Virus record (IMG/VR): IMGVR_UViG_3300042868_009074
Span: 186,001 to 250,000 of that record
Reading direction: 5' to 3' (one strand)
Length of the DNA: 64,000 nt
Positions 13,209 through 59,619 of the stretch are shown here, one piece after another; the first letter of the stretch is position 1; each line of letters opens with the position of its first letter. The notes beneath the pieces are model-generated. The model was given only the letters and a program-made list of their open reading frames with translations. It made no database searches and was not told the origin of the DNA. The position numbers and the translations under genes were made by a program.

Positions 13209-13402
13209 GCGTAAGCTAAGAAAAGGTATATATATTTAAATCTTATAGTGAGCAGCAATGCACACGTGTCGTTAGAGTTTGTATTTAGGAGGAACAATGT
13301 CAGCAACCGTTCAGGTCTAGAGTTGAGGTGTGTTGTTGTTTCAACAATGTTATATATCTTTAAATATTATAGTGTCTCTATTAGTACTTAGGAGGTACAG
13401 AC

Positions 13403-13597
13403 ATGTCATTATTCACACCACTATCACAGGCCGAGTTCGAGGCTGCGTGCGCTGCAAAGCGTGCGAAAGGCGTCCAAGCACGTCAGAAGAACAACGCTGC
13501 AGTCCAGGCTGTATCACAGCAGGTACGTATGCAGGTCATTGCTCCGGCAATGGGTTACATCACGACTCGTGACAAGAGCGTTCCAACAACCATCTAG
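13403..13597 (+). CDS. Cassette protein, 64 aa, copy 2
   Basis: AGGAGG RBS; paralogue of 12767-12961. Confidence 0.85.
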   Translation: MSLFTPLSQAEFEAACAAKRAKGVQARQKNNAAVQAVSQQVRMQVIAPAMGYITTRDKSVPTTI

Positions 13598-13717
13598 TCT
13601 TCGGACTACTCTGGTCCCTCACTTCCCCGTAAGGGGGGTGAGGGTTAAAGGAGTATATATCCTTTAAATCTTATAGTGACGCAAGGAAACCCAAGTACTT
13701 GTATCAGAAAGGTAAAC

Positions 13718-13969
13718 ATGTTTACATTAGCGCAAGTTGACGCACTCATCAACACGGCTATCAGCAAGGGCGATCTGCTCCACTACAACGGTGGTCAGGC
13801 TTACATCCGTTACGGTAACAACGTGATCATCATTGATCATGCTTGTCTTCCAGTAACAATGGAAGTCCACACCGGTGGATGGGCAGAGTCCTACATTGCA
13901 GAAAACCGTGGTGGTGGATACACTCACCACACGTCGCACTTGGCCGAGCTCCATCCGGAACTCGTCTAA
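13718..13969 (+). CDS. Cassette hypothetical protein
   Basis: GAAAGG RBS before MFTLAQVDALI; GCAA-tetraloop hairpin follows. Confidence 0.75.
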   Translation: MFTLAQVDALINTAISKGDLLHYNGGQAYIRYGNNVIIIDHACLPVTMEVHTGGWAESYIAENRGGGYTHHTSHLAELHPELV

Positions 13970-14057
13970 TCGCCAGCCTGTTCCCCCGCAAGGGGGACGG
14001 GCACCAAGGATTATAGTTCTTTAAATTATAGTATGAATTCCATGAAAGGGGATAAAC

Positions 14058-14162
14058 GTGAAGACTTTACGTTCTGCGTACTATGTTACGTACATCGTGT
14101 CAGCGATTCTTTCGTTCGTTGCTTTGGCTTTTGCCTACAAGCATCGCGACGAGATTCTCTGA
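14058..14162 (+). CDS. Cassette membrane peptide (34 aa)
   Basis: GAAAGGGG RBS, GTG start, one hydrophobic helix. Confidence 0.6.
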   Translation: MKTLRSAYYVTYIVSAILSFVALAFAYKHRDEIL

Positions 14163-14455
14163 CCAACCGCTCCGGCTGCCTCTCCCCCAGGCAAGTCGGG
14201 TAAGTCGGTTACTGTTATATATCTTTAGTTTATAGCCCACTATCACGGCTAGCCTATGTCCACATAGTGGGATAGGGTAGGCATAGTGATGTATATATGT
14301 ATGTATGTATTGTACATACCTTTAAATCATAGTATGAGCGATATGCAACTGGGTACCAGAGCTATCGTGGACTTGGTCTTTACTTCCCTTTTGGGAGGTA
14401 GAGACTACTGATTTATATATCTTTAAATTATAGTTTGCTCGTGAAAGGAGTTATT

Positions 14456-14617
14456 ATGTGGACATGTGGACACTGCACTAAGGAAATTGAAGACAAGTAT
14501 GATTACTGTGGATGGTGTGAATACTGTGGATGCACGTTGGATGATCATCGTTGCGTTTGCAAATGTGGTTCTACCGATGTGGAAGATCATGATTGCACTG
14601 GAGTTGGCTCAGCGTAA
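14456..14617 (+). CDS. Cassette Cys-rich peptide
   Basis: GAAAGGAG RBS; CGHC, CGWC, CGC, CVCKC. Confidence 0.7.
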   Translation: MWTCGHCTKEIEDKYDYCGWCEYCGCTLDDHRCVCKCGSTDVEDHDCTGVGSA

Positions 14618-14679
14618 GCTGGGTTAACTTCCCTGATTTATATACCTTTAAATTTCATAGAGAACTTAGGAGGTTCATT

Positions 14680-14850
14680 ATGGCTAAGAAAGCTATTATC
14701 TGTCGGCACTCTATCTGGTCGTTGATTAGCGACGATTCACGTCGTGCACTCATCACCCTCATCGAGGCTAACGTTGAGTTTGCTAATCGTCAGCTCAAGT
14801 TTGAGTTGGTTAATGGTCAGCTCAAGAAGGCCCCAGCGAAAGCTGGGTAA
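14680..14850 (+). CDS. Cassette hypothetical protein (56 aa)
   Basis: AGGAGG RBS; ends KKAPAKAG inside a hairpin. Confidence 0.75.
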   Translation: MAKKAIICRHSIWSLISDDSRRALITLIEANVEFANRQLKFELVNGQLKKAPAKAG

Positions 14851-14907
14851 CCTTCAACTATTTATATATCTTTAAATTATAGTATGTCCCTACAGAATGG
14901 AGATTAC

Positions 14908-15162
14908 ATGTATTACGTGTATCTACGACGTCGTATTGCGGTAGCAGTTGTACTGTTTATCGCCTTTATCCCAGTCATCAAGGTGCTCGTTCAAGAGCCA
15001 CCTGCCGATTGCGACCATGCATTGCATGTTGTTGCAAGAGGCGAGACTATTTGGTCAATCGCACATGCGCATTGCACCTCCGGTATCATCACCGCCATTG
15101 ATCAATTGGTAGATCAGTATGGTGGTGTTATCGATGTCGGTGACCGCATTCAGTTGCCTTGA
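14908..15162 (+). CDS. Membrane-anchored LysM-domain protein
   Basis: YLRRRIAVAVV TM segment, then HVVARGETIWSIA...IDVGDRIQLP. Confidence 0.8.
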   Translation: MYYVYLRRRIAVAVVLFIAFIPVIKVLVQEPPADCDHALHVVARGETIWSIAHAHCTSGIITAIDQLVDQYGGVIDVGDRIQLP

Positions 15163-15488
15163 CCAGGTCAAGTACACTCAGCCTTTTAGGTTGGGTGTAT
15201 TTGGCTATTGTATATATCTTTAAATCTTATAGTGGGAGAGATGGCACAGACAAGACTCATCCCGCTGCAGACGTGCAGTCCGGTTCGTCATGAACTGGGA
15301 TCTTGTTGGTAGTCACTGATCTTACCCGCTTAAGAGCGGTGCAGTGACTATTTACCTAATTGTTATATATCTTTAAATTATAGAGTGAGAAGCAATTGCA
15401 AACCGATGGGGCACTGGACTGCAGTGCATTGTTTCTTATTGTGTATATATCTTTAAATTTTATAGTGTGACTTGTGAAAGGAGTTATT

Positions 15489-15668
15489 ATGTCTAATGTA
15501 GACGAAGACGGACGTGGAGCATGTGTGAAATGTGGTCGTAATCAAGTATTGATTGATGAACTATGTGAAATGTGTGACAATGGGTTCACCCTAAAGGAAA
15601 TCAACATGTTTGAAACATGGTTGGCCGTTGGGGCACCCGGCGAGACCCCCTGGAGTAATCCAGGGTAA
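15489..15668 (+). CDS. Cassette zinc-finger peptide
   Basis: CVKC...CEMC; GAAAGGAG RBS. Confidence 0.7.
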   Translation: MSNVDEDGRGACVKCGRNQVLIDELCEMCDNGFTLKEINMFETWLAVGAPGETPWSNPG

Positions 15669-15764
15669 GTCCGTTGTATTTATACACCTTTAGTCCATAG
15701 TCCACTATCACGCGCAGGGTGATTATATATCTTTAAATACTTTAGTGAACTAAGGAGGTTCATT

Positions 15765-15920
15765 ATGTATTATGATTTTGACAAAGATGCTTGGTATTGT
15801 TCGACTTGTCACATCGATCTCAAGCAGATGGTTATTGACTATGACCCAGATTGTGGTGAATGCGAGTCTGCCATTTACACACTTCTGGTCAGTGGTGATC
15901 ACGACGTTTCGGCGTCGTGA
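15765..15920 (+). CDS. Cassette zinc-finger peptide (51 aa)
   Basis: AAGGAGG RBS; WYCSTC...DCGEC. Confidence 0.7.
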   Translation: MYYDFDKDAWYCSTCHIDLKQMVIDYDPDCGECESAIYTLLVSGDHDVSAS

Positions 15921-16111
15921 TTATCCACTTGTATATATCTTTTAAATTTTATAGTGAGTTGCCAACAAAACCAACCAGCGAAGTGGTTCTTCGGGTCTAG
16001 CACAGCACTAGGCGATAATGCAACTAAGATCTTCGGGAGTCATTCTCCCGAGGATCTATGCTGAAAGGTATATATCTTTAAATTATAGTTCGACTTTTGA
16101 AAGGAGTTATT

Positions 16112-16306
16112 ATGAGATTATTTATTATGCCAGATGGAAAAGGCGAAGGCGTCGATGCTGTGGTCTGTGAACGTTGTATTGAAAATGACTACGACATCAA
16201 CGAGAACAACGGTATGAGTGACCTTGAGCAGCAGCGCTACTTAAACGGGCTCGATGTTGCACCTGCTGCATCGTATTGTTGGTTGTGTGGAGTTGACTCG
16301 GCTTAG
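16112..16306 (+). CDS. Cassette zinc-finger peptide
   Basis: CERC...CWLC; GAAAGGAG RBS. Confidence 0.7.
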   Translation: MRLFIMPDGKGEGVDAVVCERCIENDYDINENNGMSDLEQQRYLNGLDVAPAASYCWLCGVDSA

Positions 16307-16372
16307 GCTGGGTTAACTCTCATGTCTTATATACCTTTAAATACTTATATGAACTCTTGAAAGGAGAACACA

Positions 16373-16606
16373 ATGAAGAATGCGATTTTATTCTTTCGTA
16401 ACATTGGCAATCCACACGGCATGGAATGGCGCAAGATTGGCTGTTTCAACATTTGGGCTTTTAGCGACTGGGCTGATTACGCAGGCTCTGGCTTGCATTG
16501 GAGCACCCATGACCGTTGCCTCGTGTTGAAAACATCCGCGAACAAGCGTAAATCTTGGAAGACCATTACACTTCTGCGTTTGCCCAAGGAAGGGACCTCA
16601 GCTTAG
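16373..16606 (+). CDS. Cassette hypothetical protein
   Basis: GAAAGGAG RBS; 77 aa. Confidence 0.7.
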   Translation: MKNAILFFRNIGNPHGMEWRKIGCFNIWAFSDWADYAGSGLHWSTHDRCLVLKTSANKRKSWKTITLLRLPKEGTSA

Positions 16607-16811
16607 GCTGAGGGACTTTTCCTTGTTTATATATCTTTAAATTTCATAGTGGTAGGCTGTACCGACGGCTATTCGATGGTCGGAGTAAATGGTGGGTCAA
16701 CACAGCGCAGGCTCCATCAGCTGGGTACCAGAAAGCTCAGAACGTTTATCGTTCTGGGTTTTTCTATTATTATATATCTTTAAATTTCATAGCGAACTAA
16801 GGAGGTTCAAC

Positions 16812-16970
16812 ATGTTTGTTACTAACTGTCCTCGTTGCGGGCAACTTGCGCCTGACTTTGAGAGTCCATCACATCAAGACGAATGGTGTTTTCATCATCG
16901 TTTGAATGGATTTGGCGAAGTCGTTGTTTCTGACGACGATTACCAGTCATCGGACGACGAGCCCTTTTAG
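16812..16970 (+). CDS. Cassette peptide with CPRC motif
   Basis: AAGGAGG RBS before MFVTNCPRCG. Confidence 0.7.
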   Translation: MFVTNCPRCGQLAPDFESPSHQDEWCFHHRLNGFGEVVVSDDDYQSSDDEPF

Positions 16971-17029
16971 GGTTCGTTGTTTGAGCTTTATATATCTTTA
17001 AATTTCATAGTGACCTAAGGAGGTTCATT

Positions 17030-17371
17030 ATGGCAACAACGCCATCCGTCACATCCCTACTATTACAACAGGAAGATTTGCAAACGCAAATTGATTCTGT
17101 TGACAGCAAGATTGCTGCGCTTCATCAGACCATGAAGGAGTGCGAGTCTCAAATCAACGCTTATGAGCAGGACCGTAAGCGTCTTGATTATTTGACTTGG
17201 GAGATTCAGAAGGCTTTGGCCAAGGCTGTCTGCCCTACTAACCAAGTTCTTCTTCGGTTCTCTAGTACTCTCAACGCTCTTCGGAATCCTGACCATCCGA
17301 GCTATGGAGCACTAGCGATTGACCAACGCTTTGCAGCCCTTGGCTTTACTCAGTCTTCTTCGGAAGGCTGA
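17030..17371 (+). CDS. Cassette coiled-coil protein
   Basis: AAGGAGG RBS; heptad pattern. Confidence 0.8.
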   Translation: MATTPSVTSLLLQQEDLQTQIDSVDSKIAALHQTMKECESQINAYEQDRKRLDYLTWEIQKALAKAVCPTNQVLLRFSSTLNALRNPDHPSYGALAIDQRFAALGFTQSSSEG

Positions 17372-17425
17372 GTTTAGCTGGATTATATATCTTTAAATTA
17401 TAGTGGGACGAAAGGAGTCATCATC

Positions 17426-26771: not shown

Positions 26772-26780
26772 CAGTTTATG

Positions 26781-26827
26781 AACCCCCAGAGTATTAGCAC
26801 GTTGCTAGTATTCTGGGGGTTTTTTTT
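26781..26827 (+). terminator. Rho-independent terminator
   Basis: AACCCCCAGAGTATTAGCA/TGCTAGTATTCTGGGGGTT followed by a T-run. Confidence 0.85.
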
Positions 26828-27343: not shown

Positions 27344-27531
27344 TTTGTTAGACCATTGATTTTATATACCTTCGAGGACATCATCACTATATATATTATA
27401 TTATTTGTAATGATGTTCTTGATTTTATCAACTTTATTTGCTAAACTATTCCTATGTAACACAATTATTTATATACCTTTATATGAATAAAAATCCATAA
27501 ACAATCCCCGTTAACGGGAAAGGAAACCACA

Positions 27532-27756: not shown

Positions 27757-28336
27757 AGGTTATCAACAATTGATAACAGCGCAGTAATCTCGATAAATCG
27801 GCTTCATGCTAACCATTTGCTTTGTTAAGAGCGAATAAGTAAACTAAAAATCTACTTCTTTGTTTTAAAGTTATGGTTAGATATGAGGCCTTTTTTTATC
27901 TATTGCTTCCTGTTTTCAAAAGATTATTATTAAGGAATAGACTATGGCTAAGAAAGATAGAACTCAACAGCACCCTGTTGATGTAAATCTACTCACTAGG
28001 TCAATAGTCTTGGTTGCTCAAAAAATTGATCAACTTACCGAAGAAGTTCGTCTTCTTAGGCAAGACCTTTCTAATAGTCCTAACAAGGAGGAATGTAGCT
28101 GAACACCAACTGGAACCACCCATATCCAATGTGTTATACTATATACATGCCCGTTGACAAGCGGGCAGGGAAACAATCCCTTACGTAACAGTTATACTGT
28201 GAAGTCGGAGAAGGCAAACCTGTCTTTTGTTGAACGGACAATTCGTTGTGTCCGGAACATTCGATTTCGCAACCTGCGCGATGCTAATGAAATCTGTTTT
28301 TAAGATTTCAAACCCAATCGAAAAGGAGCGAATAAA

Positions 28337-29212
28337 ATGCGCATACTACGAGTGATAATATTAATATTAACAATGCTAGTAACATCTGTTGTTGTTAGCT
28401 CTGCTGCTGGTGCAGCAACTGGAGGCGTCTCGGAGCTTTCTTCCGAGCCCCGAAGTACCACCCTACTCAGTACTCCTACTAAGTGGAAGTCCGTCGAATT
28501 TAAGATGGGACCTTCTATTAAGTACTGGACTAAAGTAGCCCAATGCGAGACTCGCCAGGACTGGCAAGACGGTGGCAACTGGGGTGGTGGACTTGGCATA
28601 GCTAAATCCACATGGCAAGGATATGGTGGCAAAGAGTTTGCATCTCATCCTTCCAAAGCGACTGTTCTTGAACAGATCGTAGTGGCTAACAGAATTGCAG
28701 TGTTTGGCTACCAAACAAAGAATGAGTTTATGACTGTCGAAGACAGAACTAATAACACACCATTCTTTAGACCAGCTGTTGGCTTTAATGGTTGGGGCTG
28801 TATTAAAAATAATACTTACCTCAAACCTAAAAAAGACACAGTTCTTAAAGTTAAACTTCCTGTAGGTAAAGAATTTTACTGTCCACAGTTTGAAGATACT
28901 TTTAAGAAGTATGCCCTGCCACACAAAGTGTTTTCTTATATCGCTTGGCGTGAATCTAGGTGTAATCCTGGAGCCGTCAATGCTAAATGGGAAAACGGGC
29001 ATATAGTCTGGACCCTCAACTCTAACGGTTCATACGACTCAGGTCTGCTCCAAATCAACTCTTCATGGTTTAAAACATTAAGAGAACAATTTGGTTATGC
29101 CCCTGACGATCTAATGACACCAGCAGTCAATGCTTTATTCGCCAGTTGGATTCTCCACTTCTCTAGTGGCAGACTTAGAAACTGGAATGTTAAAGCTACT
29201 TCTGTACGCTAG
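28337..29212 (+). CDS. Secreted dual lytic transglycosylase: Rpf-like domain plus SLT-like domain
   Basis: Signal peptide; WTKVAQCET...GGGLGIAKSTWQGYGG...ATVLEQIVVA (Rpf); IAWRESRCNPGAVN...DSGLLQINSSW (SLT). Confidence 0.85.
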   Translation: MRILRVIILILTMLVTSVVVSSAAGAATGGVSELSSEPRSTTLLSTPTKWKSVEFKMGPSIKYWTKVAQCETRQDWQDGGNWGGGLGIAKSTWQGYGGKEFASHPSKATVLEQIVVANRIAVFGYQTKNEFMTVEDRTNNTPFFRPAVGFNGWGCIKNNTYLKPKKDTVLKVKLPVGKEFYCPQFEDTFKKYALPHKVFSYIAWRESRCNPGAVNAKWENGHIVWTLNSNGSYDSGLLQINSSWFKTLREQFGYAPDDLMTPAVNALFASWILHFSSGRLRNWNVKATSVR

Positions 29213-29245: not shown

Positions 29246-29560
29246 ATGCAAAACACAAGAATCATTACCCTTAATCATAAGGATATCCCTATGCCTAAAA
29301 CTAACTACCTACCAGAAGAACTAGACTCTAAGTCTAAAATAAAAGAAATCATACTACAATACATTATCGATGCCAATGTAGAAGAGTATGAATACGACGA
29401 TGACGACGGCGACTGCTGTGACGATTGCTCGTATGAAGATGCTGACTGCAGCGACTGCTCATGTCATTCTGATTTTCCTGGCTACGATGAACATCTTGCT
29501 GCCCTACTAGTAAGATTCATCTATAATAACTTTAAACTTCAAGAAACACCTAATGAATAA
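29246..29560 (+). CDS. Acidic Cys-rich hypothetical protein
   Basis: DCCDDCSYEDADCSDCSCH. Confidence 0.6.
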   Translation: MQNTRIITLNHKDIPMPKTNYLPEELDSKSKIKEIILQYIIDANVEEYEYDDDDGDCCDDCSYEDADCSDCSCHSDFPGYDEHLAALLVRFIYNNFKLQETPNE

Positions 29561-30308
29561 TCAAATTAACTATGACCATGTTCACAATCAAGATCTAGCC
29601 CAATTAGATATTGAATCAGACACCCTTATGAGCGTAGATGTTGTGTCTATAATGTCACGCAAATTTAATTTTATTTCTCGTGGTTTTGATACTACAGAAA
29701 TGGAAAACCTTGTATCTTTCTATTATGACATAGAAGACACACGGATCTCGTTGCTAGATCTCAATGATTCTAAGAACTCATCTGTTTTTAAATCATATTC
29801 TCATTATCTAAGAGGATTAGAGAATTCTACTACTCCCATCTTTAGTGACTATAACCACTCCACTGTGACTGGTACCTGGGCTTTACAACAGCCTGGTATC
29901 GGACAAGCTGCCTCTGCTGCGTTGTTGTCTACGATAGATATTCACAAAGCTCCTAACTTTAATAACTTATGGAGCTATTGTGGTCTTAATCCAAGTACTG
30001 CTCAACCAGGATCTTGGAACCCATTCTTAAAGAATCTTACTTGGAAGATCGGCAAATCTTTTGCTACTGTTCCTGATTCCTTTTACGGTCAACTCTATAC
30101 TAAAGAGCTTGACCGTAGAATCAAACAACGAGATGATTCAGGTGCTGACACAGAAGACTCCAGGCTAGAAGCTCAAGCTCGACGCTATGCAACTAAGATC
30201 TTCTTGTCTCACTGGCATCAGATCCGATACATAGAAGTTATTGGACAAGAGCCATCATCTTCATTCAAAAATTCTAGTTACATTGCCCCACCTAATAATC
30301 CTTATTGA
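29553..30308 (+). CDS. IS110/Nop-domain-like protein without a nuclease domain (TasA-like)
   Basis: HhH PGIGQAASAALLSTID, LWSYCGLNP, WNPFLK, ARRYATKIFLSHW. No DEDD/RuvC N-terminus. Confidence 0.7.
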   Translation: MNNQINYDHVHNQDLAQLDIESDTLMSVDVVSIMSRKFNFISRGFDTTEMENLVSFYYDIEDTRISLLDLNDSKNSSVFKSYSHYLRGLENSTTPIFSDYNHSTVTGTWALQQPGIGQAASAALLSTIDIHKAPNFNNLWSYCGLNPSTAQPGSWNPFLKNLTWKIGKSFATVPDSFYGQLYTKELDRRIKQRDDSGADTEDSRLEAQARRYATKIFLSHWHQIRYIEVIGQEPSSSFKNSSYIAPPNNPY

Positions 30309-30365
30309 ATAAAAAGCAATGAACAATTTCAGTTCCTATCACCACTATATAATAAGAGGTAAATC

Positions 30366-30710
30366 ATGCCTATGATAACAAGTACAGAGACTCAAGTACA
30401 TCAGAACCCAGGGCGGTTCAAGATGGCTGAGCCAACCAAGCTGCTCACACCAATCCAAGGCGAGCCACCAATCGGTGCAGGCAAAGGCCGTAAGCGTAAT
30501 CCAGTGATTACCGCAATCTACAACGAGCTTGTAGGTAAGCGTAACCAGTGGTTCCACGTAAACATTCCCATCACCGACAAAAAGCAACTGAGCACCCTTC
30601 GTGCATCATTGTTTGCTCGCGCAGCAAAAGATAATCTCAGTATCTCTTCAGCGTCTGTTCTCAACGAACAAACAAAGATGATCGATCTTTGGGTAATGCT
30701 TACAGCCTAA
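30366..30710 (+). CDS. Basic hypothetical protein
   Basis: GAGG RBS; GKGRKRNP. Confidence 0.75.
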   Translation: MPMITSTETQVHQNPGRFKMAEPTKLLTPIQGEPPIGAGKGRKRNPVITAIYNELVGKRNQWFHVNIPITDKKQLSTLRASLFARAAKDNLSISSASVLNEQTKMIDLWVMLTA

Positions 30711-30932
30711 CCCAATTAAGATTTCCTAGAGTACAAGTTCATTGAACTTATAATGCTTAGATGTATTATGATTAAATGTGTGTGTTTATTGGGTACAAAG
30801 AAATAATCCTTTCTTGTGCTCTAGGATTAAAGTCTTAAGACCTGCTTAGTCATATGCAGGAGAATGACCGACGCCAGCTCGGCTCACTAAATATGACAGC
30901 TGGCTTTTACTCTATTTTTAAAAGGTACCATT

Positions 30933-31169
30933 ATGACCAATGTGATCTATTATAGACTCACTAAAGAAGTAGCTCCTTGTTTTGTTCAAAAGATATGCCT
31001 TCATTGTAATGATGAAGTATTCTTTTTAATGACACAAGATCAGTACGATCGATGGGTTAAAAATCTAGAGTATGCTCAAGATGTTTTTCCTGATACAGCT
31101 CCAGACATTCGTGAATGGATGATTTCAGGTACTCACCCGAAGTGTTGGGATGAAATGTTTTCTGAATAA
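30933..31169 (+). CDS. Small phage protein with Cys/His motifs
   Basis: CLHC...ISGTHPKCWD. Confidence 0.7.
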   Translation: MTNVIYYRLTKEVAPCFVQKICLHCNDEVFFLMTQDQYDRWVKNLEYAQDVFPDTAPDIREWMISGTHPKCWDEMFSE

Positions 31170-42598: not shown

Positions 42599-42883
42599 AT
42601 GGAATCCGAACAATTAGATGATATAATTAATTCAGTCATCAATGAACATGATGTTATACTGAATAATTATAACGATATCTATTCTTTATTCAAAGAAATT
42701 ATTTGGATGCCCAAACAAGTTCTCATAAATCTTTCTTCTGTTGTTGAGTATATGCAAAGTAAAGATTCCAAATCAACATTGGATGCGCTACAAGAAACTA
42801 GTGCAATCCTTGAATCATTAAACAAAAAAATCAATCAATCAATTGAGTTAATCAAATCTGGAGAAGTTGTTGAAAAAAACTAG
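42599..42883 (+). CDS. Helical hypothetical protein
   Basis: GAAAGG RBS. Confidence 0.65.
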   Translation: MESEQLDDIINSVINEHDVILNNYNDIYSLFKEIIWMPKQVLINLSSVVEYMQSKDSKSTLDALQETSAILESLNKKINQSIELIKSGEVVEKN

Positions 42884-43274
42884 TAGAAAACCAAAAGGCT
42901 CTAAAAAGCTAGATGACTTTAATATTATTTCTGCTAATGAAAATGGTTGGAGACACAAAGCTTCTTGCTCTTCTAAGGAAGTCAATAGCAATTGGTTCTT
43001 TGCTCAACCTAAATCCCCTGAAGCCAATAGAGCTTTAAGCGTTTGCAAAAACTGTCCTGTTAAAGCTAATTGTCTTTACGATGCAATCATGTATCAATAC
43101 CATGGTATATGGGGTGGCTATACTCAAGAAGCCCGTAATAAGATAATTGTTCATTACCTCAATAATGATTTGACTTCTTTTACCCTTGAGCAAGCAAAAC
43201 AAATCTATGATCATGTAGAACAATCTGGACAGCGTAAACCTGTCAATACAACTAACGTCCATATAAAACGTTAG
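42867..43274 (+). CDS. whiB: WhiB-family Fe-S transcription factor
   Basis: W...ASC...WFF...VCKNCPVKANCL...GIWGG. Confidence 0.92.
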   Translation: MLKKTSRKPKGSKKLDDFNIISANENGWRHKASCSSKEVNSNWFFAQPKSPEANRALSVCKNCPVKANCLYDAIMYQYHGIWGGYTQEARNKIIVHYLNNDLTSFTLEQAKQIYDHVEQSGQRKPVNTTNVHIKR

Positions 43275-50284: not shown

Positions 50285-51907
50285 ATGCTATTCTCCCAAA
50301 TTAAACTTGGAGTTCCTTCTATTTGGCTTAAGACTACTGATTATGCTAGAACCACAGAGTCTCTTATCAAGTTTAATCAACGCTCTTTCTACACTATAGA
50401 TCCCCTTAAAGGTTATGCTAAGTTCATAGACAATGAATGGAAGAGCATACTAGTCCAAATGCCTGATCCTCAAAACCCAGAGGAACTTCGTGAGACTACA
50501 ACTTTTGATTTTACTGTAGCTTACACTCATCTTCTTGACCAGTTAAACACTAACAAAGAATCTGCTACATTTTTATATTCTGTTTACACTAAACCAGAAG
50601 CAATGATGGAAATGTTTTCTGGATTGATCTCCATGAACAACACTCAATATCGTTCTGCTTTTTGGTCTGATGATCTTGAACAAATGCCTCTTCAGTTGGT
50701 GTTTATGTCTTGGTTTGATTGTCCAGAAGATTTTAAAAACATGTTTTATCTTTCTGATTTTGAAGAACCAAACCTTGAAGAACTCGCAACTATTATTAAT
50801 CACATAGATGATTCTTCTGGTAACACTCTTGTTGATCAGGGATCTCTTCCTGCAATTGCTAAAGCCGCAATTGGTTTGACAGAATCTGATTTCATTAATG
50901 TTTGTCTTAATTCTGTTCTTGAAAATGGAAAGATTGATCCAGATTATATTTATAATTTTAAGATGGCCGACATTAAAAAGAATGGCATTCTTGAAATCAT
51001 TCGTCCTAAGACTACCTTTGATAATATTGGTGGTCTTGATAACATTAAAGAACTTATTACTCGCAACGCTGTTCTTTGGCATAATCCAGAAAAAGCTGCT
51101 GAGTTTGGGATTAGTCCTATCCGTCGTATTCTTATGGTTGGCGTTCCCGGTACTGGTAAATCAGCTATTTGTGAAGCAACTGCTAATGCACTAGGGCTTG
51201 ATCTTGCTCGTACTGGTGTTAGCCAAGTTATGAATTCTTACATTGGTCAATCAGAGCAAAACATGCGTACTGTCTTTAAACAGATTAGTGTTATGGCTCC
51301 GTTGTGCGTTTGGATTGATGAGTTTGGTCGAGACATGTCTGGTGGTCAAAGCTCTGGACAAGTCGACGGCGGTACTACTGACCGTGTTCATGGTGAGTTC
51401 CTTACTGGTTTACAAGAGCTTCCTGATAACGTCTTCTTGATGTGTGCTGCCAATCAGCTTGATCATCTTAAACCAGAAATGCTACGAGCTGATCGTTTTG
51501 ACAAGATCATGTTTGTTGGTCTTCCTTCTTTTAATGAGCGTATGTCCATCCTTGATATTTATCTTCAAGGAATTAAAACAGATCACGTTTTTGATCTTGA
51601 AGAGCTAGCTCATGCTACTCAATACTTTACTGGTGCAGAGATGAAGTCTTTGATTAAAGAAGTTAAGTTTAACGTTTCTTCTGCCGAACTTCGTCCAATC
51701 AATACCCGTGATATTCTGGCTTATGCTCCGAAGCAGAGAAATATTCTTTGGAATAAGAGTCGTCAAATGATTCAAGATCTCTACGTCACTGCTATAGAGC
51801 AATGGGACTGGGCCTCGACAGATCAATTTAATGATGCTAAACTAATAGTTAGCGGTGAATCTAAAACAACAAATGCACCTGCAAAAGCCAGTGGCTTTAA
51901 ATGGTAA
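50285..51907 (+). CDS. AAA+ ATPase (Ycf46/Cdc48-clade, degenerate N-terminal module plus intact C-terminal module)
   Basis: FDNIGGLDNIK, GVPGTGKS, YIGQSE, WIDEFG, AANQ, MLRADRFD, FTGAEM. Confidence 0.92.
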   Translation: MLFSQIKLGVPSIWLKTTDYARTTESLIKFNQRSFYTIDPLKGYAKFIDNEWKSILVQMPDPQNPEELRETTTFDFTVAYTHLLDQLNTNKESATFLYSVYTKPEAMMEMFSGLISMNNTQYRSAFWSDDLEQMPLQLVFMSWFDCPEDFKNMFYLSDFEEPNLEELATIINHIDDSSGNTLVDQGSLPAIAKAAIGLTESDFINVCLNSVLENGKIDPDYIYNFKMADIKKNGILEIIRPKTTFDNIGGLDNIKELITRNAVLWHNPEKAAEFGISPIRRILMVGVPGTGKSAICEATANALGLDLARTGVSQVMNSYIGQSEQNMRTVFKQISVMAPLCVWIDEFGRDMSGGQSSGQVDGGTTDRVHGEFLTGLQELPDNVFLMCAANQLDHLKPEMLRADRFDKIMFVGLPSFNERMSILDIYLQGIKTDHVFDLEELAHATQYFTGAEMKSLIKEVKFNVSSAELRPINTRDILAYAPKQRNILWNKSRQMIQDLYVTAIEQWDWASTDQFNDAKLIVSGESKTTNAPAKASGFKW

Positions 51908-51927
51908 CAACAATATAAAGGATAAAT

Positions 51928-52554
51928 ATGTCTGAAGAATTTTCTTATCACGATGATTCATACAACCCTGAAGCTGCAATTGATGCATCTACTGGTGAAG
52001 TTCAAAAAACTTATGATAAAGATCTATACAAGAAATGGTTTCGTTCTAAAACTCAGAGTGGATTTCTTTCAATCCGTCCTTGGTTTCAGGGTCTAAAGCT
52101 TCGTATTGATATTGGTAAGACTTCTTCAGACGGCAAGCTTATGAGCAGCACTAATGTGTTTGTTGATGTAGTAGACTTTGGTGCCTATCTCAAGGCTATT
52201 ACTACAGGCACTGCAGCTCTTGGCTATCCAGCCAATGAAAGAACTGGTGTACCTAGTGCTGAAGGATTTGTTTCTTATGGTGGTGCTAAAATAAATGGCA
52301 AACCAGTAAGTAGAATATTTAAATCTCATTATTGGCAAAATGGAGATGTCTTTGATTCTAACAACTTTGTATTTAAGACTGGTCACTTTGAAGCTCGTAT
52401 GGCTGAGTCCGGAGCTTTCATTCCAGATATGAAGAATATTATTTCTTTTGATTCAATTAAAGTAACTCGTCAAGATATCCACTCTATTTCTTATATGGTT
52501 GATCTGGCTATGGCTTCTCATGTAGCTAATAAATCAGATTGGTATGAGGTCTGA
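51928..52554 (+). CDS. Hypothetical protein
   Basis: AAAGGA RBS; 208 aa. Confidence 0.8.
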   Translation: MSEEFSYHDDSYNPEAAIDASTGEVQKTYDKDLYKKWFRSKTQSGFLSIRPWFQGLKLRIDIGKTSSDGKLMSSTNVFVDVVDFGAYLKAITTGTAALGYPANERTGVPSAEGFVSYGGAKINGKPVSRIFKSHYWQNGDVFDSNNFVFKTGHFEARMAESGAFIPDMKNIISFDSIKVTRQDIHSISYMVDLAMASHVANKSDWYEV

Positions 52555-52954
52555 TATGGAAAATATAGAAGAAGAATTTCTTGAACTTCCTCCTTTGACT
52601 GAGATAGAAGAACTTAAAAGACTTCTTAACGAATTAGTTATAGGACTTGCTGCTAAGTTTGATGAGAAAATAAATCAGATTGAAAAGACCATGGAAGATT
52701 ATGAGAAGCAGTCTGCTACTCTTATAGTTGGTTTTGGTGAACAAGCAGTATTCCTTGAGGCCTTAATGGGTCAACTCCAGTTTGCTACATCTGAAGCACA
52801 AAAAGATTTTCACGATACTCTTAACAACAGTAGAAAACAAATGTTGAACATTATGAAAGATGGTGCTCGTGATCTCGTGGCCGATGAAAATGAAGGACTT
52901 GCCTCAGCCATTGAAGACGTGGTTGACTCAAAGTCAACTGACACCCCCAATTAA
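52544..52954 (+). CDS. Acidic coiled-coil protein
   Basis: GAGG RBS; heptad pattern. Confidence 0.75.
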   Translation: MRSDMENIEEEFLELPPLTEIEELKRLLNELVIGLAAKFDEKINQIEKTMEDYEKQSATLIVGFGEQAVFLEALMGQLQFATSEAQKDFHDTLNNSRKQMLNIMKDGARDLVADENEGLASAIEDVVDSKSTDTPN

Positions 52955-53147
52955 TTCTGCTTGTGTTCTGTTGGTAGATAAAGAATCTTATCCATTCATT
53001 AATACACTACCATCTTTAAATAAGATTTATCCTTTTGTTAAATCTTTGCATCCTGACATGCTTTCCCTGCATGTTATATCTTCGTCCGTTTCTTTCTTCA
53101 TTAAAAATAATGTCTTAGAACTACACACAGTAGAGGTAATAAAATGA
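52860..53147 (+). CDS. Small hypothetical protein (start uncertain)
   Basis: Fills the gap and ends in an ATGA overlap with the next gene. Confidence 0.5.
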   Translation: MVLVISWPMKMKDLPQPLKTWLTQSQLTPPINSACVLLVDKESYPFINTLPSLNKIYPFVKSLHPDMLSLHVISSSVSFFIKNNVLELHTVEVIK

Positions 53148-53764
53148 TTACAGTCATTGATACTTTAGAACAGTTTAATGATCGTTTTATTAATTTTAAC
53201 GATTCTCAAAGAACTGATTTCTTTCTTCCTTTAGACTCAATGGTTAATGATGCCCTTGTCAATAACCGGATTGAAGAACTTAGAATAATATTAGAAGATA
53301 ATGATAATTCTTATTCTTATTATGAGGATTTGTATAACTTAAATTACAGTCCTTTAACAGAACACCAGTACATATCTAATTATTCTTTACTCTATCCTTA
53401 TTCTAAAAATAATTTTATTAAACAGTTCTTTAATGATATGCTTCCTAGCTTATCTAATCATGTTTTATCTTACATGAAAACAACTTCTAGAATTGTCCAG
53501 ATTGGTGCTGGAAAAGGCAAAGGCCTTATGCTTAATCCTGTTTCTTTCACCGAAGACGATCTTCAGTTTTTAAAACCATTACAATATCAGCATGTTATTG
53601 AAGCTATGGTTAACGTCACAGCTTTAGTTAATAACCAACAAGCAGATATTAAATTCCTTCTTGACCAAAATCAAGAACTACAAACTACTAATACTATTTT
53701 ATCCCTTGAACACCAAGCAATGAATAACGCTCGAGTTCAGGATTATCTAACTACTTGGAGATAA
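53144..53764 (+). CDS. Hypothetical protein with C-terminal coiled coil
   Basis: GAGG RBS; 206 aa. Confidence 0.75.
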   Translation: MITVIDTLEQFNDRFINFNDSQRTDFFLPLDSMVNDALVNNRIEELRIILEDNDNSYSYYEDLYNLNYSPLTEHQYISNYSLLYPYSKNNFIKQFFNDMLPSLSNHVLSYMKTTSRIVQIGAGKGKGLMLNPVSFTEDDLQFLKPLQYQHVIEAMVNVTALVNNQQADIKFLLDQNQELQTTNTILSLEHQAMNNARVQDYLTTWR

Positions 53765-54669
53765 CTACTATGTCTAATTTCATTGTTCAAGATGAAAAAA
53801 CTATTCTCTATCCTACTCAACCTTGGGATGGCTCAATAGAAAACTGCATTATTCTTATTGAAGACAAAGATATGATTCCTGGCACTGTGCGCTGGGATAC
53901 TACAGCTACTGGGTTTATGTTTTATAATCTTCCAGAATATTCTACAATTTCTTCTATTAGCGATAGCCTTCTTCAAGTATACAATAAGTTTGTAATTCCT
54001 GGAAAATTTGCCAATGTCCCTTCTCCCAATGACAGCATTCCTAACTGGGCAACTTTTAACCCTGAAGACAAATCTTTCTATTTAAGATTTGATTTAGTTT
54101 TTAATATTAGAACAGACTATTCTTCTGTTTCTACTTGTAAGTTTTACACTAACCCTCATAGCAGCTTTTCTTCAGATGAATACCAGTATGCTAATAAATC
54201 AAAAGGCGACATTTGCTCTGAGCCAGTACTAAATGCCAAGTCTAGCGGCGTTGCTTATTGCCCTTATTACCAAAACTTGTTCGCTGATATGCCAGCACAT
54301 TCTTGCCAAGGTTACTCTGCTGACAGTAAGATTCTTTCTTTGACAAATCTTTCTTCTAGGCATTCTGAAAATAAAATTAATATTACTGTTACTCAATCCA
54401 GAATGGATGCAGGTAAAACGGTCAATATTTTATTTAAAGATCAAATAAATAACACTGTATTTCATGACATTAAATTTAGTTCTTTAGATAAAGACCAATT
54501 AGATTCCATACCTACTATGGTTCAATCTATCCTTGATGAAATATTAGAATCATATAAAAACGATTTTAATATTGATACACAAGATGTTATTTCGCAAGTA
54601 GTTAAAATAGAAAGAAAAAGTTTCATATCTTCTCTTATAGAAAGAGAGAATCAAGATGTCTACATTTAA
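53755..54669 (+). CDS. Hypothetical protein with Cys cluster
   Basis: 304 aa; CKFY...ICSE...YCPYY...SCQGY. Confidence 0.75.
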   Translation: MEITTMSNFIVQDEKTILYPTQPWDGSIENCIILIEDKDMIPGTVRWDTTATGFMFYNLPEYSTISSISDSLLQVYNKFVIPGKFANVPSPNDSIPNWATFNPEDKSFYLRFDLVFNIRTDYSSVSTCKFYTNPHSSFSSDEYQYANKSKGDICSEPVLNAKSSGVAYCPYYQNLFADMPAHSCQGYSADSKILSLTNLSSRHSENKINITVTQSRMDAGKTVNILFKDQINNTVFHDIKFSSLDKDQLDSIPTMVQSILDEILESYKNDFNIDTQDVISQVVKIERKSFISSLIERENQDVYI

Positions 54670-55810
54670 TATCTATAAACAATATGATGATAACCTTTAT
54701 TATCTATCTTTGATTTCTGATCGTTTTCAAAGACAAAATTCTGAATACTACAGATTCTCATCTCATCTTGGAATTATTTCTTTAGATCAAGTTCAAGAAA
54801 ATATTAATTCGTTTCCAAAGAACCGGTTAATAGATTCTCTTAGCGGTCCTTATCCAATAGCTGTTCGTTATATGGATAAAGGAGTATTCCTTGTTGAAAG
54901 GCCTCCTTTCCAAATGAAGATTGACTACTCACCTACTAAGAGCAATCGTGTTCGCCGTCCAATTAAACCAGTTACAGTCTGGGTCCCCTGGACTGTTTCT
55001 GTTTATAATTTATCTGCAGATGTAAACACAATGATCAACTCTTACAAGATATATTTTAACGACTCTTCTATATCTTCATTAGAAGATCGTTTAGTTACTA
55101 ACTATTTTTGTAATGTTTATGGTGATGGCAAAATTTGTTTAGGCCGTTCTGCTCAAGGTATCCAAGATAAATTACAAAATAATCAGATTACAGACTTTGC
55201 TACTTTACATTCTTATATGTTTAATGAATACTTTTCTGGTGGATGGAATACTGACTTAGGTTCTAATTTGTATTCTTTAATGAGAAGTATAGATTCTTCT
55301 TACATGATCAAAGATTACATTAATCTTTCTGATTCCTCAATCGATGCAAGAGCTAAAAAATTAAAGTTGAAGTTCTTTAAATCTCATCATCCTGCTTATG
55401 AGATAGCTAACTCTTTTTATAATCTTTCTCTTTTATCTCTTGAAGAAACTTTGAACATGGTTACTGAAGTAAAACAAAAGCATTTTCATCAAGTTAAACC
55501 AATTAGTTCTATTGCAGCTACTGACGTAGATAGTTCTGTAGATCATTATGTTGATCCAATAAATTTTACAGATAATTATTCTAACAATTATTGTGTTGTA
55601 AAACTTGTTTTAGATAACAGTCTTAACGCTACTAATCTTAATAGCCGTGATATCCCTTCTGAAATATTGCAGTTCTTTAAAGAAAACTCCTACGATATTA
55701 TGGATCAAGTTTACGAAAGCTATAATTCTAGAAACTCAATGTCTATTGAATTAAATTATCAAATTCCTCTTATTTCTCCTTCTACAATTGAGGAGCAGGT
55801 GAATGTATAA
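54656..55810 (+). CDS. Prokaryotic E2-like (family D) paralogue 2
   Basis: LVERPP, VWVPWTV, NYFCNVYGDGKICLG, WNTDL. Confidence 0.7.
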   Translation: MSTFNIYKQYDDNLYYLSLISDRFQRQNSEYYRFSSHLGIISLDQVQENINSFPKNRLIDSLSGPYPIAVRYMDKGVFLVERPPFQMKIDYSPTKSNRVRRPIKPVTVWVPWTVSVYNLSADVNTMINSYKIYFNDSSISSLEDRLVTNYFCNVYGDGKICLGRSAQGIQDKLQNNQITDFATLHSYMFNEYFSGGWNTDLGSNLYSLMRSIDSSYMIKDYINLSDSSIDARAKKLKLKFFKSHHPAYEIANSFYNLSLLSLEETLNMVTEVKQKHFHQVKPISSIAATDVDSSVDHYVDPINFTDNYSNNYCVVKLVLDNSLNATNLNSRDIPSEILQFFKENSYDIMDQVYESYNSRNSMSIELNYQIPLISPSTIEEQVNV

Positions 55811-56873
55811 CTTAACAAACTTTAAAAGTACTTCTTCAAATTACGAAACAACCAATGCAGGAATTGTTCATTCTCTTACCGCATTTGATTCCTCTGGCAT
55901 AAGCCATGTTATAGAAGACCAAAACGAATTTGAATTTACCTACTACAATGAGTGGATGAAAGATAATATCTTTATTTCTCTTTATCGAGATTCAAAAGAT
56001 ACTTACAATTACAATTCTAATTCCATTATTCCACCAGGTCTTATCCATATTGATAAAAACTTTTTAGTTTTTGAGAAGCCTCCTACTCATAAGCTAATTA
56101 ATATTTATAACCAGTATCTTCATGACATAAATGATGATACAAGATTATACTCTTACTACCTACCTATTCCTTGGCAAGTTTATATTGTAGAATTTGATCC
56201 TAATAATAATAGGACTTGTTTAGTTAAAATGTTCTTTTCCAAATCAAGCTTAGTTAATTTTGATCAACAGCTTTTTCTTCCTCCTATCCCTAACTTTTAT
56301 GTTAACGGATTATTGTGTCGCCCGTTCTTTAATTCCATGGATGATATAGAAAGATATTCTGCTGATGTTCCTGGAATCATGGAATCAGCTTACGATTGGG
56401 TTTGGGCTAGTAACTTTAACTTAGATCTTTCAGAAACTATTTCTTCTGTTTATGTTCAAAAGAATCCTATTCAGTTATCTCGTGGCATAACTGACAGTTC
56501 TCACCTTAGTTATAAGCTTGGCATGAGTGTCATAAACCAGCTTTACACACATTGGGAATCATTACCGTTATCTGAAGTTACTTCTTTTAATTGGCCAAAT
56601 CCAGCTTTTGCAATGACTTTTCAAGAAGATCTTGCTACTGTAGATGTCCATGATTTATTTGATCAATGGTGTGAGAATAACAGTATATCCATAGATTCAG
56701 ACGAAGAGCATGATGAATACTACCAATCTGATAGTTTCAGATCATCTCTTCCTAATCCTAAAACTATCTCTAAGACATTTAAGGATATTATGAATTATTG
56801 CATTAGCCATACTTCTTTCCCTGTTTCTAAGAAAAAACTCAAAAATATTCTTGTTTCTCGAGCATCAGAATAA
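55803..56873 (+). CDS. Prokaryotic E2-like (family D) paralogue 3
   Basis: IIPPGL, VFEKPP, LPIPWQVY, LFLPPIPNFYVNGLLC, SNFNLDL. Confidence 0.7.
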   Translation: MYNLTNFKSTSSNYETTNAGIVHSLTAFDSSGISHVIEDQNEFEFTYYNEWMKDNIFISLYRDSKDTYNYNSNSIIPPGLIHIDKNFLVFEKPPTHKLINIYNQYLHDINDDTRLYSYYLPIPWQVYIVEFDPNNNRTCLVKMFFSKSSLVNFDQQLFLPPIPNFYVNGLLCRPFFNSMDDIERYSADVPGIMESAYDWVWASNFNLDLSETISSVYVQKNPIQLSRGITDSSHLSYKLGMSVINQLYTHWESLPLSEVTSFNWPNPAFAMTFQEDLATVDVHDLFDQWCENNSISIDSDEEHDEYYQSDSFRSSLPNPKTISKTFKDIMNYCISHTSFPVSKKKLKNILVSRASE

Positions 56874-56879
56874 AACGAC

Positions 56880-56908
56880 TTGACAAATCTATTATGCTAT
56901 TATATACT
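56880..56908 (+). promoter_or_regulatory. Sigma70/SigA-type promoter
   Basis: TTGACA-17 nt-TATACT. Confidence 0.75.
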
Positions 56909-56936
56909 TATATAAACTTTAAAAAAGGTATTAAAA

Positions 56937-57245
56937 ATGGCAAAACAAAAGATGACAGAACCAGTATTCACTAGATCTGAAATAGCAGAAATACTTAATG
57001 TATCCACCCTCACCATAGCCAATAGGGAAAAGAACAAAAAATACCCTGAGCCAAAAAGAGATATGAATAACTATAGAATATATAGTTTGAATGATGTTTT
57101 CAATCTTCAACTTATTACCTATAACCATATCAACCCAAAGCCTGTGATATCTATTCTTTTTGATAAAGGGTATAAAGACAGTAAGCATCTAGGTGAAATG
57201 ATAGACAATGTTCTATCTCGTAGGAGCAACGCAAATGCAAAATGA
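56937..57245 (+). CDS. MerR-like HTH DNA-binding protein
   Basis: FTRSEIAEILNVSTLTIANRE...PKRDMNNYRIYSLNDV. Confidence 0.85.
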   Translation: MAKQKMTEPVFTRSEIAEILNVSTLTIANREKNKKYPEPKRDMNNYRIYSLNDVFNLQLITYNHINPKPVISILFDKGYKDSKHLGEMIDNVLSRRSNANAK

Positions 57246-57465
57246 TAAAGAAGAAAAGTTTTCACTAGTAGACGATGTAGATGATAATGTATCTACTGAT
57301 AATATTACAGAATTAAAATCTGGAATATTTAATCTATTTGTTAACTTGTACGACCATTTGTCCATAGACGTTGGTCCTCGTGATGCTATAATCGAATCAA
57401 CTAATTATCTACTTTATATTGTAGATACATTCAAACAAGCTCTTGAAAATGAAAATCAAGAATAA
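57208..57465 (+). CDS. Small acidic hypothetical protein
   Basis: AGGAG RBS before MQNDK. Confidence 0.65.
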   Translation: MFYLVGATQMQNDKEEKFSLVDDVDDNVSTDNITELKSGIFNLFVNLYDHLSIDVGPRDAIIESTNYLLYIVDTFKQALENENQE

Positions 57466-57495
57466 TAAATCAAACTAAATATTGGAGTAAACAAC

Positions 57496-57939
57496 ATGTT
57501 AGACGCAAAGAATGTAGTAACCATCTCAGGTGGTATAGTTTCAGAGCCAGAAATAATCAATGATAAAATAGCTAAGTTTAGAGTAGCTATTGATTACGCT
57601 GGTTCAGAAAAAGGCGGAGATAATAACTCAGGTTATTTCGACGTAGTATACTATCTCAAAGAAGGTACAAACTTCGCTTCAAAGAATGCACAGTTCTTGC
57701 ATTCTCAAATCACAGGTGGAAAACTCAAGAAGGGTTCACCACTTCAAATCCTCGGACGCTTAGTGCAAGAGCGTTGGCAACAAGATGGAGCTAACCGCTC
57801 TAAGGTTGTTATCGTAGCTGAATCAGTGTCCTACGCTGCATCTAACTACTCAAAGACTAATGAGTCAGGTGAAGCACCAAAGACTGCAGAAGCCGGATCC
57901 CCAGCATCTTCTTACTCTTCAGTACCTAACCAGTTTTAA
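57496..57939 (+). CDS. ssb: Single-stranded DNA-binding protein
   Basis: NVVTISGGI...EPE, LKKGSPLQILGRLVQERWQQDGANRSKVVIVAE, tail ending in F. Confidence 0.9.
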   Translation: MLDAKNVVTISGGIVSEPEIINDKIAKFRVAIDYAGSEKGGDNNSGYFDVVYYLKEGTNFASKNAQFLHSQITGGKLKKGSPLQILGRLVQERWQQDGANRSKVVIVAESVSYAASNYSKTNESGEAPKTAEAGSPASSYSSVPNQF

Positions 57940-58676
57940 TGGAGTCTGAGTTTAATCAGGATGATTTAGATTCTCTGATTAAAGAAGCTCTATCTGTTCC
58001 GGTAAACCCGCTGCATCCTAAATCTGGGATGCATGTGGGTTTTATGGAGACTGATATGTTGGAGCTGTTAAGCGGTCATCTTTCTAATAAGATTCCGCTT
58101 TCAGCTATATCAGAGATCTATCAAGATTTGCGATTAGATCTTTTATCTAGAAAATCTAATCATCAAATAAAAGACTTGCATACAGTTATACTTAATTGTC
58201 GCAAATGTGAGATGCAACAAACTACTCCGGAACTTCCTAAGTGGAATGTAAAAAACCCAGATGTTTTATTCATTACTGATAATCCTTCTTTAGATTCTGA
58301 TTCAGTTTCTTTCTTTCTTTCTGCTTTGAAAGAAGCCGGTTTTGAATCATCTAATGTTTGTTTAACTTACGTTAACCGTTGCCCAGTCAAAAGAAAATAT
58401 ACCAATCAAGAAGTTTTTAATTGTTCTCCTTATCTTCATAATGAGATTCAACTATTAAACCCTAAATTGATTGTAACGTTAGGTTCAGTGCCTCTAATCT
58501 CATTACTTGGATTAGATGTAAAACTTAAAGAGTATAGGGGTAATTTAACTTGGTTAGGATACTGGCCAATCATTCCCACATATTCACCAATATACGCTGT
58601 AAGAAATGGTCAGAATTTTCAAGACCAATTTTTATCAGACATTAAATCAGCACATAACTTTTCAACCAAGGATTAA
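57939..58676 (+). CDS. Family-4 uracil-DNA glycosylase-like protein (catalytic motifs altered)
   Basis: NCRKC, YVNRCP, NCSPYLHNEIQLLNPKLIVTLG, PTYSP. Confidence 0.8.
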   Translation: MESEFNQDDLDSLIKEALSVPVNPLHPKSGMHVGFMETDMLELLSGHLSNKIPLSAISEIYQDLRLDLLSRKSNHQIKDLHTVILNCRKCEMQQTTPELPKWNVKNPDVLFITDNPSLDSDSVSFFLSALKEAGFESSNVCLTYVNRCPVKRKYTNQEVFNCSPYLHNEIQLLNPKLIVTLGSVPLISLLGLDVKLKEYRGNLTWLGYWPIIPTYSPIYAVRNGQNFQDQFLSDIKSAHNFSTKD

Positions 58677-58684
58677 CACAAATC

Positions 58685-59065: not shown

Positions 59066-59077
59066 GTCTAGTTTGAT

Positions 59078-59536: not shown

Positions 59537-59544
59537 TAAACTTT

Positions 59545-59619
59545 GCCTCTATAGTTAAAGGGATATAACAAGGGACTTCTAATCCCTCGTTCTAGGTTCG
59601 AGTCCTAGTGGAGGCGCCA
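59545..59619 (+). tRNA. tRNA-Arg(TCT)
   Basis: Acceptor GCCTCTA/TGGAGGC+G, encoded CCA, loop CTTCTAA, GTTCGAGTC. Confidence 0.93.

Follow-up and report, generated by a model that had tools for sequence, protein, structure and literature searches.

TIGR-Tas systems were described in 2025 (Faure et al. 2025, PMC12045711). Their TasA proteins are RNA-guided DNA binders that repress transcription (Xu et al. 2026, bioRxiv 10.64898/2026.09.09.750476), and in SpTasH the residues Y289 and H296 of a C-terminal loop are catalytic and cut the pre-tigRNA (PMC13421893). About two thirds of the catalogued tas loci are without a detected array, and for one arrayless compact TasR branch, found in dense viral genomes, the use of another guide source was left open (Xu et al. 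2026, 10.64898/2026.09.09.750476). The question for the field is whether arrayless Tas proteins have another source of guides or whether their arrays escape detection. A more distant point of comparison is provided by the IS110/IS621 bridge-RNA recombinases, whose one structured, non-arrayed RNA is encoded beside the gene.

Within a 64,000-nt stretch of viral DNA (the window), a stand-alone Nop-domain protein resembling TasA had been predicted from the letters alone. We refer to this gene as Tas-1.

29553 to 30308, + strand: Tas-1, 251 aa, ATG start; nuclease-free Tas-family (TasA-like) Nop-domain protein

The ORF and all four motifs quoted in the original prediction are real: PGIG (within QQPGIGQAAS), LWSYCGL, WNPFLK and ARRYATKIFL (quoted as ARRY.TKIFL) were confirmed in the translation, which comprises a coiled-coil hairpin (about residues 47-102) and a Nop C-terminal domain (residues 105-230). 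Pfam returned a single match, PF02371 Transposase_20, over 44 residues (E 7e-6), and PHROG 4285, named 'transposase', also matched part of the protein (E 1.5e-15). The IS110 family transposase model NF033542 gave 17.8 bits against a cut-off of 140, and the IS110 DEDD domain PF01548 had no match in Tas-1, the N-terminal region being helical in the structure model. Furthermore, Pfam found neither DEDD/RuvC nor HNH in the protein and its AF2 model is all-helical without strands, which bears out the predicted absence of a RuvC or HNH domain and places Tas-1 in the TasA subtype. The NCBIfam model NF052498 'TIGR-Tas RNA-guided endonuclease' (TIGR_Tas_endo) matched Tas-1 over profile positions 38-212 of 215 with 92 bits (E 5e-26), which is below the curated cut-off of 100 bits of this equivalog model. 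TRF, Rfam at the gathering threshold and megablast against phage records returned nothing relevant.

For placement of the protein within the superfamily, a profile of 18 homologues was compared with the PDB, where it matched TasR (9mty, E 4.6e-26), TasH (2.7e-18) and IS621 (0.005). The AF2 model (pLDDT 84, pTM 0.85) was wholly helical, and with it Foldseek returned only TasH or TasR among its top ten hits (TM 0.51-0.63, the best matches at TM 0.55-0.63 and E 1e-5), ISCro4 and IS621 ranking after them (E 2e-3 to 4e-2, TM about 0.5). The comparison with TasR and IS621 that had been proposed as a check thus recovered a Nop fold, closer to TasR/TasH than to IS621. By profile and by modelled fold, it is well supported that Tas-1 is a Tas-family protein, much nearer the solved TasR and TasH than the IS110 recombinases; together with the NF052498 match, these results uphold its assignment as a stand-alone, TasA-like Nop-domain protein. 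An exhaustive profile search collected 4,698 cluster representatives, indicating that the superfamily is large, and the N-terminus of Tas-1 was common to just two others of them. Residues invariant throughout the Tas family, including the basic ARRY.TK motif, are kept in Tas-1. The protein was predicted to dimerise through its coiled coil (residues 30-96), with an ipSAE of 0.67 against 0.00 for the best control; 21 of 30 solved homodimers attained the ipSAE mark applied, and none of 23 monomers did. Contact agreement of the dimer runs was at least 52% and the partner pLDDT was 80. Because solved Tas dimers exist, this prediction is to be read as likeness and not as binding.

With the solo-Nop TIGR-TasA proteins FpTasA and MbTasA (PMC12045711; 10.64898/2026.09.09.750476), Tas-1 shares the Nop fold, the coiled-coil dimerisation hairpin and the conserved motifs, and it is likewise nuclease-free and phage-encoded. 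It differs from them in lacking the Tyr/His loop, in its shorter insertions 1 and 2 and in its sub-cut-off NCBIfam score; its genome contains no dual-repeat or stem-loop array, either beside the gene or elsewhere, and Tas-1 is a fixed core phage gene whereas TasA is a movable accessory locus. The arrayless compact TasR branch (Xu et al. 2026) resembles Tas-1 in having no detectable array, but it contains RuvC and has no coiled coil, whereas Tas-1 is nuclease-free and has retained the coiled coil; in addition, the Tas-1 genome has intergenic space, and array-bearing sister phages reveal what has been lost. The IS110/IS621 recombinases have an RNA-binding Nop-like domain in common with Tas-1, which is set apart from them by the absence of DEDD/RuvC and of mobility and by a sequence similarity far weaker than that to Tas. 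By analogy, their single RNA encoded beside the gene could serve as a model for Tas-1.

Three genes surround Tas-1 directly.

28337 to 29212, + strand: Rpf/SLT-type lytic transglycosylase, 291 aa; first gene of the Tas-1 run, with PF06737 and PF01464 on its homologues
29246 to 29560, + strand: acidic Cys/His-rich small ORF, 104 aa; its stop overlaps the Tas-1 start by 8 nt
30366 to 30710, + strand: 114-aa ORF; always adjoins the Tas gene in this phage group

The gene order is fixed in all Tas-1 homologues: transglycosylase, acidic Cys-rich ORF, Tas-1, 114-aa ORF and, further on, a DEAD-box helicase and an S8 peptidase. The homologues come from at least five diverged phage lineages, are 44-92% identical, intact and full-length, and occur as one copy per genome. 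Embedding in a phage operon, as originally predicted, was corroborated by the recurrence of the same neighbours across five lineages, and this constancy argues against a mobile element. The dN/dS ratio of Tas-1, calculated with its closest orthologue, was 0.13; comparisons with more distant orthologues gave 0.18-0.21. Tas-1 is under purifying selection and, given this and the fixed gene order, is not a decayed transposase; that outcome, which had been named at the outset, is contradicted by the synteny, the dN/dS values and the intact homologues.

The acidic Cys/His-rich ORF is translationally coupled to Tas-1. In each of the five lineages a homologue of 82-105 aa immediately precedes Tas-1, and none is present upstream of the canonical Tas in the blocks of the sister phages. 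The 114-aa ORF stands downstream of Tas-1 here and upstream of the array-linked Tas in the sister phages, and is 65% identical to its counterpart there. Pfam gave no match on eight neighbouring small ORFs, the 104-aa and 114-aa ORFs included. The closest relative, L002, has an additional 193-aa ORF (L002 9143-9724) between the transglycosylase and the Cys-rich ORF; by eye, it is close to a 197-aa ORF that in the sister block lies between the Tas gene (Tas-2) and the array, a resemblance that would point to exchange having taken place between blocks of the two types. Elsewhere in the neighbourhood, a very strong terminator-like hairpin (26,780-26,822, + strand), consisting of a 20-bp stem and then a T-run, stands after an 847-aa gene. 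Contigs from freshwater metatranscriptomes, matching at 90-100% identity, span 27.39-28.63 kb and short stretches of Tas-1 (29,995-30,335); they indicate presence in RNA libraries only, with DNA carry-over possible, and are weak evidence of transcription.

Arrays were then sought by the published definitions (Faure et al. 2025, PMC12045711; Xu et al. 2026, bioRxiv 10.64898/2026.09.09.750476). TRF, lag autocorrelation, a motif-chain scan, a stem-loop scan and a tigRNA-unit profile found no array in the window, so that the lack of a visible array noted originally held under five scan types; TRF, lag, motif-chain and stem-loop scans found none in the 104-kb record of the window, and nine Tas-1 loci from five lineages had none within about 10 kb. 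The suggested scan of the full genome for ~36-nt dual-repeat arrays was carried out on a closed genome of 217 kb, described below, and came back empty: lag autocorrelation, a strict two-unit scan, unit-profile nhmmer (sensitive to single units) and canonical and generalised stem-loop scans detected in it no dual-repeat array, no unit like those of the sister array and no stem-loop units above chance. As a positive control, the same scans picked up arrays of period 36-38 immediately next to the tas gene in the majority of 80 distant viral relatives. The gap at 27344-27531 (188 nt) held no tigRNA-like unit and two copies of a promoter-like motif, and the gap after the Tas gene of L064, considered as an array, holds a 148-aa ORF instead. 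Of the motif, TTATATA[CT]CTT, the window contains 19 copies where 3.1 would be expected; 15 copies are on the + strand and most stand before small ORFs, with 15 sites at 13,223-17,393 (13 on +) and others at 27,362 and 27,469 (+). Conserved in the sister phages as well, it resembles a promoter or operator specific to the phage.

Tas-1 is also present on the IMG/VR contig G001 (267,766 nt), a public contig that is an NCBI record as well; window position p corresponds to G001 position p + 186,000. In a self-comparison of G001, the left ~60 kb, which carry Tas-2 and an array, were collinear with the right ~60 kb, which carry Tas-1, at 25-92% protein identity (blocks 1-50,663 versus about 207,000-267,766, the second including window positions 21,000-64,000). 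The contig IMGVR_UViG_3300034283_001965 runs at 100% identity from G001 265,545-267,766 directly into 50,664-61,566, and this joint closes a circle of 217,103 nt without the array block. The resulting size agrees with the ~212 kb implied by CheckV (49% completeness for the 104-kb record) and with sister genomes of 203 and 211 kb (211 with terminal repeats), each of which has one block and one Tas. For the joint of the left array block to the rest of G001, no independent contig was found in support. The same samples contain both phage types, whose sequences do not differ from G001 position 50,664 on. Judged from these joints, G001 seems to have been assembled across two related phages that differ by an allelic, collinear ~60-kb early-gene block, and the array block is most probably the allelic region of a co-occurring sister phage. 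The array is likely the sister phage's because an independent contig closes the Tas-1 genome without it. Accordingly, the G001 array as a distal array of Tas-1 was set aside on the grounds of the collinear 60-kb ends and the circle-closing contig, and is considered below as a rival only. The claim that the guide is encoded elsewhere initially seemed to hold, with an array on the same public contig, but that array has its own Tas-2 and most likely belongs to the sister phage. Outside the window, G001 also contains a 12-nt tandem repeat of ~16 copies at about 166,410-166,605 (GGTGGAAAGAAA-like) and collagen-like Gly-X-Y repeat ORFs on the minus strand at about 165,700 and 262,300.

The sister-phage array is a dual-repeat array at G001 160-980, with 22 units, a period of 37 and 9-nt spacers. 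Its edge repeat is AATGAATCA and its inner repeat about ATTAGTAACA; the edge repeat is also found on the tas strand in the arrays of the nearest array-bearing relatives. A framing with AATGAATCA as the loop repeat was rejected, as the array ends with AATGAATCA at both sides and it is the AATGAATCA-bounded units that phages have in common (5 shared units against 2). Tas-2, a canonical Tas of 283 aa, lies ~2 kb before the array with a WhiB-like gene in between, and was seen on contigs that are identical to the start of G001 and extend upstream. The array is identical in five independent assemblies (G001 160-980; L016 12,830-13,360; L220). With G002 it has just 5 of 14 units in common, in matching order, and with a strain variant of the sample itself just 2 of 9; so few shared units indicate that units turn over between close relatives. 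The spacers had no match to Tas-1 phage DNA above mismatched-pair controls, in both framings and two target geometries. Tas-1 and Tas-2 are 28-31% identical and differ in the lengths of their insertions.

The array-linked Tas of the sister phages (Tas-2; G002, G003) occupies the same block as Tas-1, with the transglycosylase, the 114-aa ORF, Tas, a ~845-aa protein, the helicase and the S8 peptidase. Unlike Tas-1, these proteins have 283-285 aa, carry a Pro-Tyr...His-x-His loop, score 170-182 bits against NF052498 and are encoded 60 nt to 2 kb from an array of 6-22 units with a period of 37-38. Phylogenetic analysis gave the Tas-1 family a support of 100/100 on a stem branch of 1.49 and grouped it with the Tas proteins of L064 and L083; the sister group of these loop-less proteins was formed by the array-linked Tas of the sister phages, and all of them fell within the dual-repeat clade. 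The joining of L064 and L083 could be influenced by long-branch attraction. The tree and the common gene position show, at the level of sequence, that Tas-1 descends from the array-linked Tas gene which sister jumbo phages carry at this position. The description of Tas-1 as a 'domesticated' IS110 protein is hence not the best one, as it nests inside the array-linked Tas clade.

All 14 proteins of the Tas-1 family have a 5-residue deletion at the Tyr/His processing loop and no His there. The pattern [YWF]xxxHxxH was found in 46 of 79 relatives, with His-x-His visible in most of the other tails, and Tas-2, like the majority of array-linked relatives, has the Pro-Tyr...His-x-His loop. The Tas proteins of L064 and L083 are likewise without the loop and without an adjacent array. 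As far as alignments and scans reveal, loop loss and array loss coincide within this phage group, and Tas-1 has been kept as a fixed gene of the early/replication block despite both. The below-cut-off NCBIfam score and the very long branch imply that the RNA binding of Tas-1 could itself have changed. An unusually fast divergence of Tas-1 relative to its neighbours was rejected, since other gene pairs of the block are also just 26-43% identical and the long stem branch of the tree was its sole support. L064/L069/L071 and L083 are IMG/VR fragments of related jumbo phages (8-31% complete) with the same conserved block; against NF052498, the L064-type Tas scores 97 bits, below the cut-off, and that of L083 118 bits, above it.

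Structured RNAs of the window had been named originally as guide candidates, and two lie close to Tas-1.

28147 to 28336, + strand: structured 5' leader of the transglycosylase gene; fold z -4.67
30833 to 30937, + strand: two-hairpin RNA element, ~105 nt; specific to Tas-1 loci, 0.5 kb downstream

The leader is strongly conserved in all phages of the group; an alignment of nine sequences gave 53 predicted pairs, 12 of them with compensatory changes, and Rfam had no match for it. It may be a new cis-regulatory RNA. As a guide it was rejected, for it occurs also in phages that have only Tas-2 and has no variable segments. In the downstream element, the two hairpin loops are mutually complementary (GTCATAT / ATATGAC). 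Its first stem occurs in three different base-paired versions, and in L005 the loop-loop pairing is altered on both sides; this covariation is that of five sequences only. A covariance model of the element (R1) scored 99-110 bits once in each of the five Tas-1 lineages, and in a search of 529 kb of related sequence found nothing in the sister block, in L015, L016, L030, L064, L083, L010 and L012 or in the remainder of the 268-kb contig. No box C/D-spacer layout was recognisable in it. A TTTT follows three of the five copies, so the element may be no more than a structure at the end of the operon, and its confinement to Tas-1 loci could stem from the close relationship of the five phages and not from function. 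From its distribution and pairing, it is the best local candidate for an RNA partner of Tas-1, better than the transglycosylase leader; of the proposed guide candidates the leader thus drops out and the element is retained as a candidate only.

We tentatively read Tas-1 as a hard-wired RNP that uses a fixed, non-arrayed RNA, and hold this view with somewhat less than even confidence. A programmable, array-fed effector would have become a hard-wired regulator: dimeric Tas-1 would take up a single fixed RNA that lies outside any array and does not depend on processing by Tas, and would bind or block a fixed nucleic-acid target but leave it uncut, as experiments have shown for other TasA proteins. 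The two-hairpin element at 30833-30937 is the candidate for the fixed RNA, and the acidic Cys-rich ORF would be a likely protein partner or modulator of Tas-1. The complete picture, a transition from an array-fed Tas to a hard-wired RNP with this acidic partner and with this RNA, either loop of which might base-pair with one of the two strands of a single 7-bp DNA site, regulating the phage's own programme, would be so far undescribed, and in that full form we regard it as doubtful. The Tas-1 case pairs an array-free closed genome with sister phages that keep array and loop at the same position, and shows which changes accompany array loss: the loop is deleted, and both the coupled small protein and the structured RNA nearby are new. 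It is thus a natural test case for the function of arrayless Tas proteins. If a single fixed RNA is indeed used, Tas-1 with its 251 aa would count as a very compact RNA-guided DNA binder that does not rely on processing.

Guides could instead reach Tas-1 in trans, as tigRNAs made from the 22-unit sister array and matured by Tas-2 or a host RNase, provided that the 268-kb contig is correct and both blocks belong to one genome, or that the two phages co-infect. We consider this unlikely. The array and Tas-2 do stand on the same public contig as Tas-1, which retains the Nop core residues common to Tas-2, and its main loss, the processing loop, would be dispensable if another protein matured the RNA; the two phage types, identical from G001 50,664 onward, also meet in the same samples. 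However, the independent contig closes the 217-kb circle without the array block, at a size matching both the CheckV value of ~212 kb and the sister genomes of 203-211 kb with one module and one Tas each, and the joint of the array block is without independent contig support. The low identity of Tas-1 to Tas-2 (28-31%) and their unlike insertion lengths speak against shared guides as well, and the Tas-1 family is old (down to 44% identity), with which dependence on a co-infecting relative fits poorly. An array that simply went undetected, because it is very short, very divergent or has its guides inside coding sequence, would make this an ordinary TIGR-Tas system. Such an oversight has precedents: published tools found arrays at 6,685 of 20,096 tas loci (10.64898/2026.09.09.750476), a motif-chain scan of ours overlooked the sister array, as the box C triplets of the two repeats differ, and the lag scan missed a 5-unit array in L030. 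We nevertheless rate it as very unlikely, given that four complementary scans of the closed genome and the scans of nine Tas-1 loci were negative, and that the loss of the processing loop is an independent sign against dual-repeat array processing.

It may also be that Tas-1 works without a guide, as an RNA-independent structural or regulatory protein or as a decoy for the tigRNAs or Tas subunits of rival phages, possibly in mixed dimers. A very long stem branch followed by purifying selection is the pattern expected of a change of function; array and processing loop were lost together, in L064 and L083 too, the coupled and highly acidic small protein is confined to Tas-1 loci, and sister phages with active-looking, turning-over arrays live in the same habitat. 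Against this, the family-invariant residues including ARRY.TK are retained, for which continued RNA binding is the simplest explanation, and the sister-array spacers have no above-chance match to the Tas-1 phage and so give no sign of direct conflict; on balance a guide-free role seems improbable. If true, an anti-TIGR decoy directed at array-carrying sister phages would be of a novelty similar to that of a hard-wired RNP. Descent into a remnant of an IS110-family transposase, to which the partial matches to PF02371 (E 7e-6) and PHROG 4285 (E 1.5e-15) might point, is extremely improbable, for solved Tas structures match Tas-1 by many orders of magnitude better than IS621, there is no DEDD domain, the position is fixed in five lineages, and dN/dS values of 0.13-0.21 go together with intact, full-length homologues.

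Four to five tRNA genes were found in the window, at 36,732, 39,871, 40,760, 42,504 and 59,545 on the + strand, of types Leu-TAA, Lys-TTT, Met-CAT and Arg-TCT, the one at 42,504 being a weak match by Rfam only. WhiB-like genes are present at window positions 42,867-43,274 (+ strand) and at G001 1-162. These genes and the Rpf-domain transglycosylase suggest that the host is probably actinobacterial, likely of a low-GC freshwater lineage.
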